A stretch of 64,000 nt of DNA from Oikopleura dioica (lineage: Eukaryota; Animalia; Chordata). The notes below the pieces were generated by a model. The model was given only the letters and a program-made list of their open reading frames with translations, did no database searches and was not told where the DNA came from. Shown here piece after piece: positions 7,976-29,410 of the stretch. The stretch covers positions 5,518,001 through 5,582,000 of the forward strand of contig OU015569.1 in NCBI GenBank assembly GCA_907165135.1, given 5' to 3'. How positions within the stretch are numbered: position 1 is the first letter of the stretch; every line of letters begins with the position of its first letter. A program made the position numbers and the translations under genes.

Positions 7976-10205
7976 ATGCCACCGAAAAAGGGAGGAGGAG
8001 CGAGTAAAAAGACCGAGGCGAAAAAGAAGGAGAAACTTATCGAGGATAAGACCTTTGGTTTGAAAAATAAAAAGGGAGCCAAACAGCAAAAATTCATTGA
8101 TCAAGTCGAGAAGCAGGTCAAAACGGGCGGAAAGGTGAACTCATGGGCTCAGGATCAGGAAAGAAAGAAAGGAAAGGGGTTTCAACTTTTGTAGGGAATG
8201 GCACATCTTCCCTTTATTTATATATTTTCGACCAAGGCTTCTGAAAGTAAACCCCTGATAGCTCAAGAAAGGAAGAAAGCAAAGGAGGCAGAACTTTTGG
8301 AGCTTGAGAAACTGTTCGGAAAGGCTATCCCCGCCAAGAAGGGAGGTGCTACGATGATGACCAAAAAGGCAAAGTCGATCCAAAGGAGAAGGCAAAGAAA
8401 GCTGATCTGCACGTCGATCGACGAGATGAAGAGAAGAACAAAACGATGGAAGGATGGACCGAAGAAGAACTGCGCGCGGCGATCGAGAAGAAACACGGCA
8501 AATCTAATAAGAACGCCGCGACGACGACGGACAAGATCTGCAATCATTTCTTGCAAGCTGTCGAAGACAACAAGTAAGCTCACTGATATGTGTTCCGTTC
8601 GCTAGTTTTCTTCCAGATATGGTTGGTTTTGGGACTGTCCTAACGGCGATAAATGTAAATACCGACATTGTCTCCCAGAAGGTTACGTTCTCAAAAAGGA
8701 TCTAAAGAAGATGAAAGACGCCGAAAAAGAAAATCAGATCTCACTTGAAGATTTGGTAATCAAAAAATATTCCGGCTATATACAAACACTATTCAATAAA
8801 CAATGTTTATAAAACATCAATGCGGACCAGGAAGCTGATTTTGTGATCTAGATTGAGAGAGAAAGAGCAGCTCTCGGTCCTGGCACGAAGATCACCTGGG
8901 AGACTTTCTCTGTCTGGAAAAAGAAGAAGAAGGAAGAGAAAAAGAAGGCATTGGAGAAGGAGAACAAAAAGAAGAAAGGAAAGGCCAAGAGTGGACAGAC
9001 TACTGGACTTACTGGTAATATTCTTGAACTTTTAGTGAAAAAGAAAATCTTAAGGCCGAGAATTGTTCACCTTCAATGCTAACATGGGCGGCGACGATGA
9101 TGAAGCTGAAGACATCGAGTTCGAGAAAGAGGTTGCTATTTGAAGTTCTTTGTCTTTTATTAAAAATGCGATAGGAAGACGATCCCGAGGAAAAAGTGTT
9201 CGAAGTCGGAGCCAATACCTTTGAACTTGGCGCTTCGGAAACGCTCCTCAGATCGAAAGGGGCTGTTCCGACGTCAGCGGAGAACCGGTATTGCTGGGGC
9301 GGCGACAGTGCCAATAAGGTTGTAGTAGTTCAAGAAGGAACAAGCGAAACGACAACGCCGGCAGAGAAACCCGCAGAGCCTGTAAGTCGAGAAAAATATG
9401 TGAATGCGTGTGTCCGCAAAAATAATATTTCTATTGATCGATTGATGATTTCAAAAAACTTTTTGTGCGGCCGGAAATCGTAAAAAAACTGCAAGTGCAG
9501 TTTTCTTCAGCTCTTCAAGACGAATCGAATGATGGGTCTAACTCCTGATAACTCTAAGGATTTACCGGTTTACCGGCTGGTTACCGGAAAATACGTTGTC
9601 AGCGGCCGTTTTTGTTCTAGAAGTGATAGACTAATGTTTGACACCGGAAATTGTTCCTTATAGTCAGTTCTCCTGCAGCCTAAAAGATGAAGATTGTATC
9701 AAATCTCTGAAGAGAGTTATCACTAAAATACTATTTTTGGCGAAAATGGGACTAGAAATTAGGAACGTGCAGCAACAACAAAATTTTAGTAAAAATTACT
9801 GTTTTTAGTGATAACTCTCTTCAGAGAATTGATACAATCTTCATCTTTTAGGCTGCAGGAGAACTGACTATAAGGAACAATTTCCGGTGTCAAACATTAG
9901 TCTATCACTTCTAGAACAAAAACGGCCGCTGACAACGTATTTTCCGGTAACCAGCCGGTAAACCGGTAAATCCTTAGAGTTATCAGGAGTTAGACCCATC
10001 ATTCGACTCGTCTTGACGAGCTGAAGAAAACTGCACTTGCAGTTTTTTTACGATTTCCGGCCCCACAAAAAGTTTTTTGAAATCATCATTATGAATGTTT
10101 AAGGCGCCTCCCGCTGTTGAGGTCGATGAAGACCTATTCGGCGAAGACCTCGGCGATATCGATGCAGAACTCGGCGACCTCGGACTGGAAGAAAGCGCAA
10201 GTTGA
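7976..10205 (+). CDS. ZC3H15: ZC3H15/DFRP1 (DRG1 partner)
   Basis: [40 protein letters not shown], then [31 protein letters not shown] and [16 protein letters not shown] frame discontinuity lies near 8350 (see findings). Confidence 0.92.
9443..10088. mobile_element. fold-back MITE-like element, copy 1 (inside ZC3H15 intron 9382-10103)
   Basis: Arms of about 285 bp are near-perfect reverse complements (TGATGATTTCAAAAAAC...GTTTTTTGAAATCATCA) around a ~80 bp spacer; no ORF. Confidence 0.85.
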
Positions 10206-20690: not shown

Positions 20691-21338
20691 AGATGATTTC
20701 AAAAAAATTTTTGCGGGTCTGAAAATCGTAAAAATTCTGAAAGTGCAGTTTTCTTCAGCTTGTTGAGACGAGTCGAATGGTGGGTCAAACTCTTGATAAC
20801 TCCAAGGATTGACCGGTTAACCGGCTGGTTACCGGAAAATACGTTTCCGGTCGCCGTTTTTGTTCTAGAAATGCTAGGATGATGAATGAACCCGGAAACT
20901 GATCCTTATGATCAGTTCTACTGTGGGCGAAAAGATATTGGTCGAATATATAGCGAAACTTTTTTTAACGATAAAAATTCTAAATTTTGTATGTATTTCG
21001 TTGTTGCTGCACCTTCCTAATTTTCGGTCCCATTTTCATAAGAAAATAGAATTTTGGTGATAAGCATCTTATGGTTAGAGATATGATTCTCATTTTTTCA
21101 CCCACAGAAGAACTAACTTCAAGGACCAGTTTTCCGCTTTTTTTTGTCATTCTAGCATTTCTAGAACAAAAACGGCGACCGGAAATGTATTTTCCGGGAA
21201 ATTGCCGGCTAACCGGTTAATCATTGGAGTCATCAAAAGTTTGACCCATCATTCGACTCGTCTCGACGAGCTGAAGAAAACTGCACTTTCAGATTTTTTA
21301 TGATTTCCGGACCCGCAAAAATTTTTTTGAAATTATCT
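20691..21338. mobile_element. fold-back MITE-like element, copy 2 (same family as 9443-10088)
   Basis: Same terminal GATGATTTCAAAAAA and shared internal blocks (AAGTGCAGTTTTCTTCAGCT, TTACCGGAAAATACGTT, TTTTTGTTCTAGAA) in both arms; more diverged than copy 1. Confidence 0.8.
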
Positions 21339-21867
21339 GAAAACAATATTTAACTTTTGACGGATAGAACGCAATGAGTGTATCTAGATCTTCTACCGGT
21401 AGTTGTTATTTCTTTTGGCCACAAGCAACAGTTAGTCAGAGCATGATTGAAGATAAACTTACTGCGCATTAGTGTTATTGGATTTCTAGCTATGATGATT
21501 TGTTAGAATTAGAATTAGGTTTTTAGTAAATATTTGTTCGGCCGATTCGGTAGTGTCAAACGGTTTTCACTTAATATCTTTTAACGCATTCTGTAGTGAA
21601 GGATTGTAAAATTTTTCTGGATGAGTTGACTGTTCAGATACGAAGAAGGAGCTGTTGCGCATTTAGACATTCGTAGTAGCTGGAAGCAGAAATCAATTAA
21701 CATCCTGTGAAGCCATCGAGTCTTGTTGCCTTGCGCAAGCGCCGCACCTACGCATTTATCGCCGCTGAGTAATTTTGCGAATTCGTGATTTTAAAAGAGC
21801 ACGGATTCTGCTTTATTTCGTCCTCGTCGGTATTATTCAATAACTCAGGAGTGCTTATTCAAACGAT

Positions 21868-22806
21868 ATGAGAGAAATTACGGTCTCAAGTTTGGCTCTC
21901 ACAAAAATGATGCTTCACTCGTATAAATACCCTCATCTACGTGAGTTTTCTTGAAAAAATTAACTGAAATTCATCGTTTCTAATTTTTCAAGATAATATA
22001 ATACAAGTCAGAATATTTCGTAATTTTTCACTAGTCAGGAAATAGTTATTTGGGTTATATAATATTACTTAAATAAGATTCTTGAGTTACTTTTGCTTTT
22101 ATACTTGTGAATTGAATATTTAGCTGTAAATGGTGTTTTACTGATGGACTGCGACATCGAGAAAGAAACTTATATATCCGAGTGTATTCCTCTTTTCCAC
22201 CAGGTGAGTATAACTTTTGTTGCGCAGTTGTGATCTGAATTGTCAGGGTATTTCGCTGAAGCCAATGTTCCAAGTAGCGATGAGAACGGTAGAAGACTAC
22301 TGCGAGCGGAACAACCTGGCCATCGCTGGCTACTACGAGTCGCCCGAAATCGTCAAGAGCGCCACGCCATCGCAGTACGCGGAGAAGGTCGGCGACAAGC
22401 TCCGTGAGCAATTCAAGGACGCCTTCCTTCTTCACAACATTTGGCAAGAAGACTCCAAATTCGCCCTGAGACCGTTTGTCAAAGAGGTGCGAAATTTTAT
22501 CGATACTTCTAGAATCTGTGTTGATTGATTTGCATTTAGTCTGGAAAGTGGGTTTACTCTTCAAACAAGCTCAGCTTTGAGAACGAAAACGTTTTCAAGA
22601 CCGTCGCTCAGCTGCATAAAGCCGACTTCTGCCTCGAACTTCAAGTTAGAACTTCTATTATTTTGCGCACGCATGGCCTTTTCTAGGACTTTGACTGCTA
22701 CCTCGACAACTTCACGAACGACTGGACAAACAGATCTCTGCAAGAAGTGATTATGCTTGTGGACGCGCAAACCGAGCACCAAGATGCTAGTATAAAGGCG
22801 AAATGA
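21868..22806 (+). CDS. EMC8: ER membrane complex subunit 8/9
   Basis: Spliced TKMMLHSYKYPHLPVNGVLL..ECIPLFHQGISLKPMFQVAM..IAGYY..AEKVGDK..QDFDCYLDNFTNDWTN. Confidence 0.9.
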
Positions 22807-22971
22807 CACGAATTGAACAATGGCGCTACTATTTCTACCTTTTCCTTCCCAAAATGTCTCACACCGAGCTTTACTTTCTTAGATTATTTCGAATTTGTGC
22901 AATCTTCAAACATGTTGTGTGCGCTCCGTTAATTCAATAGCGTCGCAAAACTGATTTCGCTTGTTCAGAAG

Positions 22972-23431
22972 ATGTTGAACAGAACTCTCGCTCGACAGAT
23001 CGTCTCCGTCAGAAACTTCCGATCTGGCTCTTTCCAGGTAATTCGCTTTAGAAGGAGTTACTAATCTGCGCTTGTAGAACAAGTTCAACCAAGTCCCACC
23101 AAAGAAGGTCTACTGGGGCTCTGCCAAGCTCTCTGGTGAAGCTTTCCTCGCTGCCGGCGCCATTTTCTTCTTCTGGGCCTTTGACCGACTCGCTCGAGCT
23201 GACTTCCTTTACTCCAAGTTCCACATGTCTGCCTCTCACTTCCAGATGGGTTCGCTTCGTGTTTGAGTTCGCACCAACTGACAAAATCGTTAAGATAACA
23301 TCATCATCGTCGATGGCAAGTACCGATACATCCCCACCAAAATGCACCCCGCCGAGCACGAGAAGGACGTCTCCTACATGTCCAACTTCACCGAGTACGA
23401 CTGGACCCCTACTGATGGCAAGGGCATCTAA
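22972..23431 (+). CDS. small mitochondrial single-TM protein, possibly complex I subunit NDUFB2
   Basis: Three exons give MLNRTLARQIVSVRNFRSGSFQ-NKFNQVPPKK..EAFLAAGAIFFFWAFDR..DWTPTDGKGI. Transit peptide and C-rich codon usage; only weak resemblance to NDUFB2 (YRQFP..EFFSGLMWFWILWRF..QWTDEELGI). Confidence 0.5.
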
Positions 23432-23730
23432 GCTCGTTCACGTTAACCCTAGTAAGTCTTTGAAAGTTGTTCTTTTTGATCATTTATTGGCGTCTGATGA
23501 ATAATTTAGTTGCTCGATTCCAAGCAGAAGTCGAAATCGTCGTTTCCACCTGTTCAAACCTTTCGGATTATTTATTCGACCGCATGCAAAAGAAAATTCC
23601 CTTTTCTTCGGTCTCCTACTAAACACGACTCCAATAAAAGTCAATATTCGCATTAAAACTAACATGTTCAGACTTGTTTTTGTTTTCCGAATCGACTTGC
23701 TATTTGCCTGTTGGGTGTAAAATACGCTTA

Positions 23731-25593
23731 ATGAGCAAATTGCAACGCATTGCCAGAAGCAGGACTATGATGCGCATGATGGACGATCCTCGTTCAATAG
23801 AACACGAAGTCCGAAAATTCATTGACTCTGGAGCCCTTGAGGAATACTGTACGTTACAATTATCTTCAATATTGCTTGCTAAGCCCAATTTAGTCAAAAA
23901 CGGCAAAATAACGCTTCAGTATCTTCTGCATAGCGTTCAGTTGGATATGCCAGACGAGTGCGATTGGGAGACGTTCCAAGAAGAATTTTTCCGCCAGTAT
24001 TCTCAAAAGATCATAATTTGTCGTGCTCTCTCGAATTCTAACGATGACGATAGTAAGATATTTCTTCATTTGCATGTATTGATCGTTCATTTAGGCAACC
24101 AAGAGGCGAGCCCACAAACTTCTGGCTTCAGAAGTGATTTTTCGGTCTCGCGCACTGTTTCTCCCGTTAGAAAACTCCACGGTGGTCATGATAACAACAA
24201 TGTGATCGACGCGAACCGTGAGTCCAGTCGCCGCCGTCGAACGCAAGCTATAAGAAGAGGCGAGCAAGCTCTTCTAGAAGAACGCTTGAATCGTCTTACG
24301 ATCAACGTTGGTCATCAAGTTGTCCGTCCACCCCCAGAACCTCAAGTCAGCCTGATGCCTAGACGATCGTGCCGTTCGAGTCCCCAAGAAAGATCTAACA
24401 AAGGGCCGACCGCTTGCAAGGATCACCTTGTCAAGCGCTGCAGTAGGGTGGCTCACTTTTCGGGAAGGTCTTCCGATTACGTTCTATCCTTGTCAGGTGG
24501 AATGTTTCTACCCATACAACATATAAAAAATAAAAATTCGAAAAAAAATTTTTTCCCCAAAATTTTTTTCCAGAATTTTTTTCTCAAAATACAGTTTTCG
24601 TACTGTAATTTCTCGGCACATACCCGAACCTTAGTACTAAATTACATTTTTCGAAAGAGCTCATCAAGCTGGTCATTATGATACCCATATCTTTTTTCGG
24701 ACAGAAGTGTGACAAAAGTTATGGCCAGTTAACCCCAGGTTTTTTGGCCAAAATATCGAAAATTTCGAAAATTTTAGGCGTTTTCCTGAATTTCAAGGGC
24801 AGATAAAAATACTTTCCGAAAATCTCCCAGGGGTGGTTGAGTGCTCAAAATACTCAGCAGAATGAGCTCTTTCAGATAAGCACAAGAAATCGGGTGTGCC
24901 GGGAAATTGTTGAAAAAGTGAGCCACCCTACGCTGCAGGGCATTGATTAGATCCCAGTCCGAATACCCGCGCATTCTACGAGTTGATGAATACGAAAGTC
25001 TTTACCAAAAGCTTTTCGACAGTAATCTCCGAATAGATTGCGAACGACACGGAGATAGTTGGGCGACAATCAATGAGCTTGGAAGCGAGGAGGGAGAAGT
25101 TTGGAACACACGAACCCAGGCAACTACCTTGCTCTATTCTCCATTCAACGAGGAAAGAGTTGGCCATGGTGTTCAAATCAAGTACTTAGCTGAGAAGTCT
25201 GTTTTGACGGGTTTGTAGTAAGTTCACAGTCTAGGGAAATATCCAGTTTTTCGAGCGGGCCTAAAATTATTCTAGCTTGTTTAAACCGAAATCAATTCAA
25301 TACTTGGATTCAAACGAGATCAATGCACTCCGAAAGGGTTACGGACGCCTTCTCGAGCGATTGTCATCGGCTGAGGAAGTGGCGAAGATCAAAGAAACAC
25401 CGTACGATTACCGCTACTTCTGCTGGCTCTGCGGTGCGGACGACATCGACGAAGTTGTCGAGGTCCTTGTCAAACCAACCAGGTAAGACTCATCACTTCC
25501 TAGTTGGGAAGATCACAACTATTTATTGTTAGAAATGATCACTCGCTCTCACCGGTCAATTTTTCTCCAAACCGTGTTTCAGTTTCAGTCTGA
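23731..25593 (+). CDS. unknown protein; coding exon interrupted by a hAT-type element
   Basis: Long open frame from 23731 runs into the element; the frame resumes at 24939 in register with the pre-insertion allele; further exons include YDYRYFCWLCGADD. Confidence 0.6.
24444..24930. mobile_element. non-autonomous hAT-type MITE, 487 bp
   Basis: 17 bp perfect TIR (TAGGGTGGCTCACTTTT / AAAAGTGAGCCACCCTA) flanked by an 8 bp direct repeat CGCTGCAG at 24436-24443 and 24931-24938. 8 bp TSDs and TAGGG termini are typical of hAT elements. Confidence 0.92.
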
Positions 25594-26396
25594 AAGTTTA
25601 AATCAAGTCTTGATGGCAATGCGACAAAGCCTAGGACGCGTGATCCAATCGATTTTCCTCATTTTTACAAATCAATTTTGATTAACGAGATAATGTCTTC
25701 GTCGTCAAAAACTGTTAGTTTTCCCCGCCGAAGATTTCGGTGACAAGCGTGATCATGAAAAATAGTAGCGATATATTTTTTGATTAATAGCTTATGACTC
25801 ATAGTGTATTCTGCTAAGTTAAACATTTATCACTGCGATATTTTCAGACAAGAGAGATCCTCTCGCCGCTCCTCCCGACAATTCGAATCTACCTAAAGAG
25901 GATCTCTTTATATAATCAATTTTTCACACTGTCATAAATTTGTTTTATAATCTAAATTTTCAAGACCTGCCTGTTACGAGCTCTCATTTCCTAACTGAAA
26001 ATCGCTTAATAATAAGAACGCTCAAAAAGTTCAATTCCTCAATAGCTGCTCAAACTGCGCCAGTTTTTCCCTATCTCGTTTCTCGTTTTTTTCCACGTTT
26101 CTCGTTTATTGTTGCAGGTCACTAAGTGCTAAAGAGAACTCCTAACTCTAACCCAAACTACACTACCAAAATTCTTCATGCTGTATCGCTGTCTTTTGCC
26201 CACGCTAAAAAAAGTTCGGGTTAGAGTAATCACTTCAAACGTTTCCAAAATTGTTAAATATTTTAAAACAAAGGTTCAATAATTCTTAACTATTTTTCCT
26301 CTGTGCTCTTATTATTTTCTTCAACTTTCAATGTGCATCAAGTTGAATATAAAAATCTCAAATTTTGACTGAAATGTAACTGTTATCTTTTAGAAA

Positions 26397-27088
26397 ATGG
26401 TGTTGTCAATATTTCAAAGGTTTCTCGACTGGCTAAAAGCGCTTTTCTTCAAAGAGGAGATGGAGCTATCGCTTGTCGGCTTGCAGTACTCGGGCAAGAC
26501 CACATTTGTTAACGTGATTGGTCAGTCTTTCTTCCCGCTCGTCTGTTTCACTCAGTTTTTCTAGCGTCTGGCAGCTACACAGAAGACACCATTCCCACGG
26601 TCGGATTTAACATGCGTAAAGTTCAAAAGGGCAACGTATCGATAAAAATTTGGGATATTGGCGGACAACCTCGTTTCCGAACAATGTGGGAGCGATACTG
26701 CCGAGGCGTCAACGTAATCGTATACATGGTCGACGCGGCCGATCACGACAAAATCGAGCAGACAACTCGCGAGCTCCACGAGCTTCTTGACAAACCATCA
26801 CTACAGGTTTGAGAAACTATCAAGCAGCTGTATATATCCATTTATTCTTCAGGGCATGCCCGTTCTCGTGTTGGGGAATAAAAACGACCTTCCCAACGCG
26901 CTCGACGTTGACAGCTTAACTGACAAACTCAATCTTGATCGAATCGACGACCGGGAAGTCGCAGTTTACACGATCTCCTGCAAAAATAAAAATAACCTCG
27001 ACGTCGTTCTTCAGGTTTGATCTGCTGCGCTAACTATTCTGGCTAACTTGCGTTCTAGTGGTTGACAAATAAAGCGAAGAAGAACTAA
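26397..27088 (+). CDS. ARL8: ADP-ribosylation factor-like GTPase 8
   Basis: [64 protein letters not shown]; four exons. Confidence 0.97.
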
Positions 27089-27567
27089 AATACGTGATTC
27101 CTGTTCGTCGCTTCACCTCACAAAAAACTACTCATGTCACCTTTGTTCAGTCATTAATATCGCGTCAACTTTTCTCAATGTTTCGACCTTGCCCTTTATT
27201 TGTAACTTTCAATTTCCCGATTCTGTGCGGATAACCGATCTCTTTCAACGCTCGCCGAAATCACGATTCATTGTAGCTGGCTAGTCAGAAAAATCAAAAA
27301 AGACCTTATTCGCATGTCTCAATCACTCGCCCGCAGTGGCTACCCGTTGTCCCCAACCGCTGTAGGCACACGTTTTATATTTTCATCCTCTTTCTATTTA
27401 TCGTCTCAGCTCTTTCACATGTAGCAAGTTCAACAAAAAACAACAATACAAACAGCCTTTTTCCGGCCATTCAAAAAAAAAATACAGAAAATTCCGCATA
27501 AAATATCCTTCATTCTGTGAATAAAACGATATTCATCAAAAAAGTGAAAACTTTTTTTTTCTGAAGA

Positions 27568-28411
27568 ATGGCGAATTTGGAGCAAAACGAAAAGTTCGCC
27601 AGTCAGGAGTACTGGGACAAGAGGTTTTCTGTTGAGGAGGAGTTCGATTGGCTTGGCAAGCTCGATGACTTTTTTGAAATTTTGAATTTGGAGCCGCATT
27701 CTGCGATACTCGTCTTAGGCTGCGGCAACTCGACTCTCAGGAAGCGTGTTGAAAGTTTTTTCCTTTTTGTTTCTTGAGTTCTCGTTTTCAGCACTCGTAG
27801 TCAGCATCTGGAAGAGCGCGGTCATTTTGTAGTGTCCACTGATTACGCTGCTTCTGCTTGCGAGAAGCAGAAGAGGCGTAAACCATCGCATCAGTATTTA
27901 ACGTCGGACTGTAGGGACAGGATCTGTAGGCGCGGCTTCGATCTCGTCATTGAAAAGGGTGTCATGGACGCGTTTCTGGCGGCTGAAAATCCATGGTCGC
28001 CGTCTAAAGAGGCTAGCGGGATGATCAGGAGTACTATCGAAGCAGCCAGAGGGAGCTCAGACAGATTTATCTCTATTTCATTCCATTCTCCCCTAGATAA
28101 GGGTCTATTCGAACGTAGTAGGACAACCGTATGTACTGAAAAGTGACCCTGATAAAGTTAGGCTTCCATTAATATTGTCACCGGACGAGTACGATGTTTC
28201 CTTGAACACTTATCAAGCTGCTCTGGAATTTTATGCTTATTCGTTTGATTTTGAGAAGAGGTTATCCTTTCAATTTATTTCATTTACAAATAATCCGATT
28301 AGTAAACAACAGTCAATTTTGCCAACATTGGGAAGCGTGGAAAATGATTATGATGGGAGCAGTTTATCAGAAGACTCAGAAGGCTTTTTAGACGGCATAG
28401 TTGTTGACTGA
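27568..28411 (+). CDS. EEF1AKMT4: eEF1A lysine methyltransferase 4-like
   Basis: EYWDKRF..FDWLG..ILVLGCGNS (SAM motif I), FDLVIEKGVMDAFLA..NPW, RFISISF. Confidence 0.8.
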
Positions 28412-29410
28412 TATTCCAGTGTGAGAAAATAAAGAACCGAAAATGTGATTATTGTTAATTAACAAAGGCCTAAATAGCGTCAGCTCACTTTTCTGCCTTT
28501 TAGACTTGATCTAAATTTAGCAAGTCAGATAATTGTCAAATGTTAAAAAAACGGATAATCGAATTCGCCCACTTGGGAAAAGTTTGGCAAGCCGTCTGGC
28601 TGATCTTAGAGGATATCTTTTCTGATAGAAAACGAATAAAATATGCACGAGAAAAAGATCTCTGCTTTGCTGATCCCCGTGTTGAGCTGATGCAACCTTG
28701 GGTAAATCTCTTTACTATAAAAGTAATCAAAGAAACTCCATTTCGGAAGGTCGAATGATTTTTAATATTGAGTCTTTAATACTTTTATTCATGATTTTAC
28801 GGGTGAATCGTCGTTTAATAGGTTATTTGTATCTAAGTTCTTAATTGGAACGTATCTTCTTTCACCGCTGCTTCTTTGGCTGAGCTTACACTTGATTGCC
28901 AATTATGTCGGTCGAAACGAAACAGATGAGTTTGGGCGAACAAAGTGGCAACTCAGCGGGAGTTCCTTTTCTACTATTTGCAGGTTTGCATGCTAGAGGA
29001 TCGTCTTTTCAACTTGCTATTTTAGCTTGCCGACGGGGTCACGTGCCAGCAGAATTTCGGGAACATTTCTGCGCTCTACTCTCAGCCGAGTCACGGAGGG
29101 AACCGGGAAACGCTCAGTTTCATAAGATATTCATTTCTGTGCATTTTGTTCTATGACAGGTTTTTTTTTATATTGCACAAGATCTTGGGAGTCTAATAAC
29201 TCCAAGACGACACATCGTAGAGGGTCCCCCATAGCATCAAAATGTAGCTTAGGGTCTGGGCTATTGTTTGAATAAGTTTGAGATTCTAGTGCCCACGTGG
29301 GATTACGTAATATTACGTAATAATCTAAAAAATGTTATATTTTCAGTATTAGAGGTGCTAGAACCTCGATCTAATGACTATTCGAACTCTATTTTCTTCC
29401 TCTTTTTTCA

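Follow-up and report, generated by a model that had tools for sequence, protein, structure and literature searches.

Can a transposon that lands in a coding exon become an intron at once, with the element supplying the donor and its target-site duplication supplying the acceptor? This question is raised by g14848 (Oidioi.mRNA.OKI2018_I69.XSR.g14848; 23767-25896, plus strand), a gene in a 64,000-nucleotide stretch of the Oikopleura dioica assembly (positions 5,518,001 to 5,582,000 of OU015569.1; hereafter the window). Its third exon (24095-25217) is interrupted by a 487-bp element. An earlier interpretation of this DNA, here called the sequence-only reading, had proposed a nascent 471-nt GT-AG intron that runs from a GT in the left end of the element to the AG of the right duplication (24468-24938). 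Our analysis points to a plainer outcome. Probably, we are dealing with a recent and still polymorphic insertion of a hAT-like miniature inverted-repeat transposable element (MITE) into a constrained exon, which leaves a disrupted or hypomorphic allele. Judged by the predicted strength of the splice sites, intron birth through GT 24468 and AG 24938 is disfavoured.

The element and its empty site

The element (24444-24930) is non-coding, has a GC content of 37% and belongs to a multi-copy family. Its left terminal inverted repeat (TAGGGTGGCTCACTTTT; 17 nt, 24444-24460, plus strand) recurs in inverted orientation at the right end (24914-24930, minus strand; the gene strand reads AAAAGTGAGCCACCCTA) with 0 mismatches, compared to 0.01 matches expected by chance. 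Both ends are bordered by a perfect 8-bp direct repeat, CGCTGCAG, at 24436-24443 and 24931-24938, and the terminal AG of the right copy (24937-24938) is the acceptor of the proposed intron. The element, its perfect ends and its duplication had all been located correctly in the sequence-only reading.

The corresponding empty site was found in two sources. Three TARA/ENA contigs (L001-L003) follow the window as far as 24443 and match it again from 24931 onwards, the two alignments overlapping by 8 nt, which is the exact empty site. These contigs are identical to each other across g14848 (97-98% identity to the window) and were therefore counted as one haplotype. The DNA run X28 carries the same species label, comes from a different study and represents Okinawa-type DNA; here, a 3875-nt contig (>99% identical) joins 24435 to 24931 and contains a single copy of the 8-mer. 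Among the sequences compared, the filled site is present in the reference assembly only. These data establish that the insertion is real, recent and polymorphic, and that it is absent from another Okinawa-type sample as well as from a wild TARA haplotype. The recent hAT-like insertion deduced in the sequence-only reading is borne out by the empty alleles and also by the near-identical copies described below.

A filled site confined to the reference assembly would also fit an assembly artefact, or a somatic event caught in a single molecule rather than a germline allele. However, a perfect 8-bp duplication together with inverted ends that match perfectly, in DNA that is collinear apart from the element, is the signature of a real transposition, and the assembly was built with 221x Nanopore coverage of one individual (PMC8008620), so we hardly reckon with this explanation. 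The sequenced animal was one male from generation 47 of a laboratory culture (PMC8008620). The assembly record OU015569.1 (OKI2018_I69, GCA_907165135.1) represents the X-specific region (XSR) of O. dioica. Therefore, this male was hemizygous at the locus and carried the insertion allele alone.

No further copy of the 17-nt end, and no transposase-bearing partner with such ends, is present in the 64-kb window, even if up to 3 mismatches are allowed. Outside the window, two other family copies were recovered, one of them 97.6% identical (L126) and the other a derivative with a 240-bp deletion (L127); the flanks of neither have a coding appearance. In X28, the summed word depth of the element amounts to 300-1440 versus 68 for the flanking single-copy DNA (about 5-20-fold), and other flanks are visible. 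The copy in the window differs from every X28 copy at 24780, at 24827 and in one T-run. The element is thus young, though not demonstrably brand new, and the differences could also reflect an assembly error within the repeat. When JGI metagenome contigs were searched for the 17-mer end, at least 120 matches were obtained; none contained the element, and their number is close to chance expectation.

Inverted ends in the hAT superfamily measure 5-27 bp (17 bp in Hermes), the terminus of Mar reads CAG(G/A)GG, and Ac and Hermes prefer targets of the form nTnnnnAn (PMC3517528, PMC10368747). Like the hAT MITEs Mar and Vege of Drosophila willistoni, the element has an 8-bp duplication and short ends, with a TAGGG that resembles the terminus of Mar. 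Its body is likewise small, rich in AT and non-coding, and its family comprises several copies, deletion derivatives among them. Six flank duplications of the family are available (CGCTGCAG, ACTTGCAG, CCGCAAAG, ATGCAAAT, CTGAGAAC and ATAAGAAG). Of these flanks, 6/6 carry the A at position 7 that Ac and Hermes prefer, whereas only 3/6 carry the T at position 2, with six sites being all that this comparison covers. Four of the six duplications end in AG. Judged by the 8-bp duplication, the 17-bp TAGGG ends, the small AT-rich non-coding body and the near-identical copies, the element fits a hAT-type MITE.

Two side observations concern the interior of the element. One frame runs without a stop over 79 codons in the window copy (24444-24681) and for 147 residues in L126 (108-551; P0004); its low complexity suggests that it is probably a chance product. 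Moreover, a 260-nt contig from a marine metatranscriptome (X1) matches the interior at 24623-24882 with 4 differences. This contig represents either another, transcribed copy of the element or DNA carried over into the library.

Coding constraint at the insertion site

Without the insertion, exon 3 of g14848 measures 628 nt. Removal of 24444-24938, that is, of the element and one copy of the duplication, gives a continuous frame (..LVKRCRALIRSQSEY.. / ..KDHLVKRCRALIRSQSEY..), as the sequence-only reading had found (..LVKRC-R-ALIRS..), and the frame is unbroken through exon 3 in the empty TARA allele (P0001). A comparison of g14848 with the TARA haplotype revealed 1 nonsynonymous and 6 synonymous differences in codons 204-331, and three of the six synonymous changes are found upstream of the insertion, no more than 90 nt away from it. 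Assuming that about three quarters of random changes are nonsynonymous, the binomial probability of at most one nonsynonymous change in seven is ~0.001. In addition, a distant homologue (P0003; 39% identical, with an uninterrupted frame on a 1.5-kb JGI contig) aligns directly across the insertion site, with KDHLVKRCRALIRSQSEYPR set against KEQLVMRCRTLTRSSSSFPR of P0003. Taken together, the empty alleles, the 1:6 ratio and the alignment with P0003 establish by sequence comparison that the insertion site is coding and under purifying selection, and the earlier claim that the element had hit a coding exon is upheld.

The annotated product of g14848 (P0002, 335 aa) is an orphan. An exhaustive HMMER search found only P0001 and P0003 as relatives, and no Pfam match was obtained, even at E = 10. 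A language-model and structure search of the ESM atlas provided a lead towards an OST-HTH/LOTUS-like winged helix for residues 215-294 of P0001 (24410-25180 in the window). This lead spans exactly the stretch interrupted by the element and is unconfirmed, with a predicted local distance difference test (pLDDT) score of only 43.5 for the AlphaFold model. In the N-terminal half of the gene (23767-24340), 16 nonsynonymous and 3 synonymous changes separate the window from the TARA allele. By these counts, g14848 is composed of a fast-evolving head (23767-24340) and a constrained tail (24340-25215).

Splice sites and the fate of the transcript

Donors and acceptors were scored with matrices that rest on 21 introns of the window. 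To define these introns, we threaded the gene spans and product lengths of the annotation and, where possible, checked the result by homology (ARL8 GTPase, a kinase domain, DUF2237, UPF0172 and g14848); the introns themselves were scored by leave-one-out. The set is small, mostly annotation-derived and restricted to GT donors, and hairpins lie outside the model. Matrices learned de novo from open reading frames and codon bias were rejected: three attempts gave flat and noisy results, and one homology-checked ARL8 donor was mis-called.

The sequence-only reading was right that the removal of 24468-24938 (471 nt, GT..AG) keeps the frame: it yields ..LVKRC-SRVAHFSG-RALIRS.., with 24 extra nt. Likewise, a transcript that retains the element would meet its first in-frame stop at the TGA (24679-24681, plus strand) which that reading had pointed out. 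But the two sites are poor. The donor AAG|GTCTTC (24468-24469, plus strand) scores 1.3 bits, which is below 20/21 reference donors and corresponds to the 75th percentile among the GT dinucleotides of the window. It has neither an A at +3 nor a G at +5, whereas 83% of the local donors carry G at +5 and the remainder A at +3. The AG of the duplication (24937-24938) scores 2.2 bits, which is above 6/21 reference acceptors and makes it the 8th best in the region. As a pair, the sites total 3.5 bits versus 6.0-18.7 bits for the reference introns, below 21/21 of them. By this 21-intron, GT-only matrix, the element and the duplication fail to provide competent splice sites.

Stronger sites are found elsewhere in the region. 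The best acceptor-like site (TTTTTTTCCAG|AA; 24560-24573, plus strand, 10.3 bits) is located inside the element, as are further strong acceptors at 24777 (8.3 bits) and 24797 (7.6 bits). Only one motif of the element resembles a strong donor (AAA|GTGAGC, GT at 24918, 7.4 bits), and it lies in the right end, from where it is unable to remove the element. The ends are inverted repeats, and every copy, on either transcribed strand, shows the strong donor-like AAAAGTGAGCC at its 3' side and TAGGGTGGCTCAC at its 5' side. The end layout of the family is, as far as these motifs indicate, the opposite of splice-ready. The best element-spanning pair regardless of frame delimits an intron at 24346-24938 and causes a frameshift.

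A further question is how much weight an in-frame route carries. At this locus, 128 canonical GT-AG pairs keep the frame and are free of stops, and the proposed intron ranks 5th among them; the top-scoring pair delimits a 612-nt intron of the public gene model. We shuffled the interior of the element with its ends kept fixed (n=300). An in-frame pair was available in 300/300 shuffles (mean 76 pairs), 59% of the shuffles contained an in-phase GT that pairs with the AG of the duplication, and 28% provided an in-frame route adding at most 30 nt. An in-frame splice route is therefore unsurprising, because shuffled elements regularly offer one. With its donor and its pair at the bottom of the reference range and in-frame pairs expected by chance, the ready-made splice route from GT 24468 to AG 24938 is disfavoured, though not refuted.

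RNA and peptide data do not provide junctions at the element. In the raw RNA runs X8 and X9 (two 2026 runs of the species), 0-1 reads fall on g14848, and the indexed O. dioica RNA runs contain 0.00 of the locus words. The only RNA found on g14848 is a metatranscriptome contig that covers 25276-25482, away from the element. Peptides across any element junction were absent from the protein database (queries of 184-586, 62-198 and 51-163 aa); the searches returned only P0001, P0002 and two reading frames through other copies of the element.

How, then, would the insertion allele be expressed? The route from GT 24468 to AG 24938 has some points in its favour. Its sites exist and keep the frame, the hemizygous carrier male was viable, and 4/6 of the family flanks end in AG, so that an acceptor in the right duplication would recur. 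Introners of Aureococcus similarly add 12 nt (4 from the element and 8 from the target-site duplication) to the transcript (PMC9860276). However, its donor and pair are weaker than almost all or all reference introns, an equally small addition is available in more than a quarter of the shuffled elements (28%, see above), and the eight residues would enter the conserved RC|R motif. Moreover, the junction 24467/24939 was seen in no RNA or peptide. We consider this route very unlikely. The public gene model instead removes the element together with 39 flanking codons by the 612-nt GT-AG intron (24346-24957, plus strand; CAA|GTCAGC ... CCCAG|TC, by threading of P0002), which would give an internally deleted protein in frame. 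The good donor of this intron (6.4 bits) and its rank as the top-scoring in-frame canonical pair speak for it. Its acceptor, on the other hand, is poor (0.5 bits), and the donor pairs better with AG 24938, which shifts the frame, or with acceptors inside the element. The 39 codons belong to the coding sequence of the empty allele and show conservation in P0003, and the conserved stretch LVKRCRALIRSQ would be deleted. The gene models of OKI2018_I69 were predicted by AUGUSTUS with RNA-seq hints from pools of generations 30-31 (PMC8008620). Since the indexed RNA runs of the species do not cover the locus, the 612-nt intron possibly has little or no read support, and it may be the way of the gene predictor round the stop codons rather than an observed splice. 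As an actual splice, we regard it as quite unlikely.

A different way to remove the element would be a near-scarless, non-canonical GG-AG cut of 24447-24938 (TAG|GGTGGC ... CTGCAG|G). It leaves TAG, adding 3 nt and thus one Ser (..KRC-S-RALIRS..), and it would keep the frame at any family site with an AG-ending duplication. Besides the in-frame junction, the reported share of non-GT donors among O. dioica introns (~11-12%; PMC4122922, PMC8008620) is in line with such a cut. But the non-canonical class described for O. dioica in the literature cited here is GA-AG in an AG|GAA context (PMC7072748), which is absent at this site, and the candidate junction is found in no RNA; the matrix, which scores GT donors only, does not apply to it. 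This route appears highly improbable. For the transcript of the element, a long hairpin is predicted (z = -9), in which the two ends would come together. We also considered an excision of the Fritillaria type (AG-AC or AG-AT) and rejected it: a scarless cut would need AG..GC ends, and such a system is not described for O. dioica in the literature cited here. Overall, it is unlikely that the insertion allele is functional, with a permissive spliceosome removing the element in frame either by the GT-AG pair (+8 residues) or by a hairpin-aided GG-AG cut (+1).

We favour the disrupted or hypomorphic allele. The transposase made an 8-bp staggered cut at CGCTGCAG, within the conserved peptide LVKRC|RALIRS. 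The inserted element does not appear to be built for splicing: its left end lacks a competent donor, its donor-like motif lies 3' and its best acceptors are interior. Most likely, transcripts of the allele would then either retain the element and run into the stop at 24679-24681 or be spliced at cryptic sites, most of which would cause a frameshift or the loss of conserved residues. The allele would therefore most likely be null or hypomorphic. Its being tolerated suggests that the gene may be dispensable for male viability, and drift in the small laboratory culture (generation 47) could have kept the allele. The genome of O. dioica holds one gene per 3.7 kb, with a median intron of 49 bp. Exons fill a large share of such a compact genome, so young insertions would often strike them by chance.

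Some points weigh against this interpretation. The hemizygous carrier male reached maturity; the allele is thus compatible with life, which also fits a functional spliced allele. The spliceosome of O. dioica is reported to be permissive, and 76% of its introns are at new positions (PMC4122922, PMC8008620). Fritillaria borealis, a related larvacean, removes MITE insertions as introns (reviewed in PMC11282704). Finally, non-canonical donors and a hairpin that pairs the ends are outside the scope of our small, mostly annotation-derived splice matrix.

The locus can be compared to three systems in which transposons are spliced out. Introners, which are intron-generating DNA transposons of Micromonas, Aureococcus, Symbiodinium and others, have also been reported in the tunicate Styela clava (PMC9860276, PMC12130899). 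As in these cases, an element with inverted ends and a duplication is present where relatives have uninterrupted coding sequence, and the proposed scheme likewise takes one splice site each from the element and the duplication and adds few codons. What defines introners, however, is that their splicing has been demonstrated and that numerous genic copies share one splice-site arrangement, whereas only the one exonic copy in g14848 was seen here. In addition, the element-borne donor is weak here, and stronger competing sites exist inside the element. A parallel within the same animal class is Fritillaria borealis, in which a modified U2-type spliceosome neutralises the MITEs that have inserted into genes (Henriet et al. 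2019, cited in PMC11282704 and PMC13326754). According to these two papers, the resulting introns are mostly AG-AC or AG-AT and need Fritillaria-specific U2AF paralogues. O. dioica, unlike Fritillaria, has mostly GT-AG introns plus GA-AG, and AG..GC is not described in the O. dioica literature cited here.

The third system is maize. In the late 1980s, Wessler and colleagues reportedly found that Ac/Ds insertions in exons of wx, adh1 and bz are partly spliced via cryptic sites in their ends, which gives leaky alleles. There, too, a hAT-type element sits in a coding exon and is said to be rescued by imprecise and inefficient cryptic splicing rather than by a dedicated design, but the spliced products were demonstrated in maize, whereas they are only predicted for g14848.

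As matters stand, the polymorphism is an ordinary one, in which a young transposon disrupts an orphan gene that evolves fast, and exonic strikes of this kind are to be expected in a compact genome. The value of the locus is that of a clean test case, with an exact pair of filled and empty alleles, a constrained exon and hemizygosity in males. It also lies in a species with 76% of its introns at new positions and an unsettled mechanism of intron gain. If the insertion allele were functional after all, it would show us the birth of a spliceosomal intron, in an X-linked gene that is hemizygous in males and with presence and absence still segregating within one species. It could then be one case of a genome-wide route from hAT elements to introns behind the lineage-specific introns of O. 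dioica.

Gene structure and neighbouring sequence

The window region 20767-28896 is 100% identical to L004/L128, the locus of the annotated protein P0002. Threading of P0002 onto the DNA placed the other introns of g14848 (plus strand) at 23849-23893, 24053-24094, 25218-25275 and 25483-25847. The last of these is backed by the marine metatranscriptome X1, in which a contig joins 25482 to 25848. Within the same intron, 78 nt (25493-25570) are missing from the TARA contigs and present in X28; transposon ends are not obvious at this indel.

The two short introns at 24053-24094 (42 nt) and 23849-23893 (45 nt) are both stop-free and multiples of three. In the window and in X28, the 42-nt intron has a GT donor; the TARA haplotype, with 24054 T>A and 24056 A>T, has GA instead. 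This difference is either a GT/GA donor polymorphism or a sign that the segment is read through in some alleles.

Elsewhere in the window, 9444-10087 and the region around 20691-21337 share a repeat of ~570 nt with an identity of 71-75%, and the latter copy also matches itself in inverted orientation.

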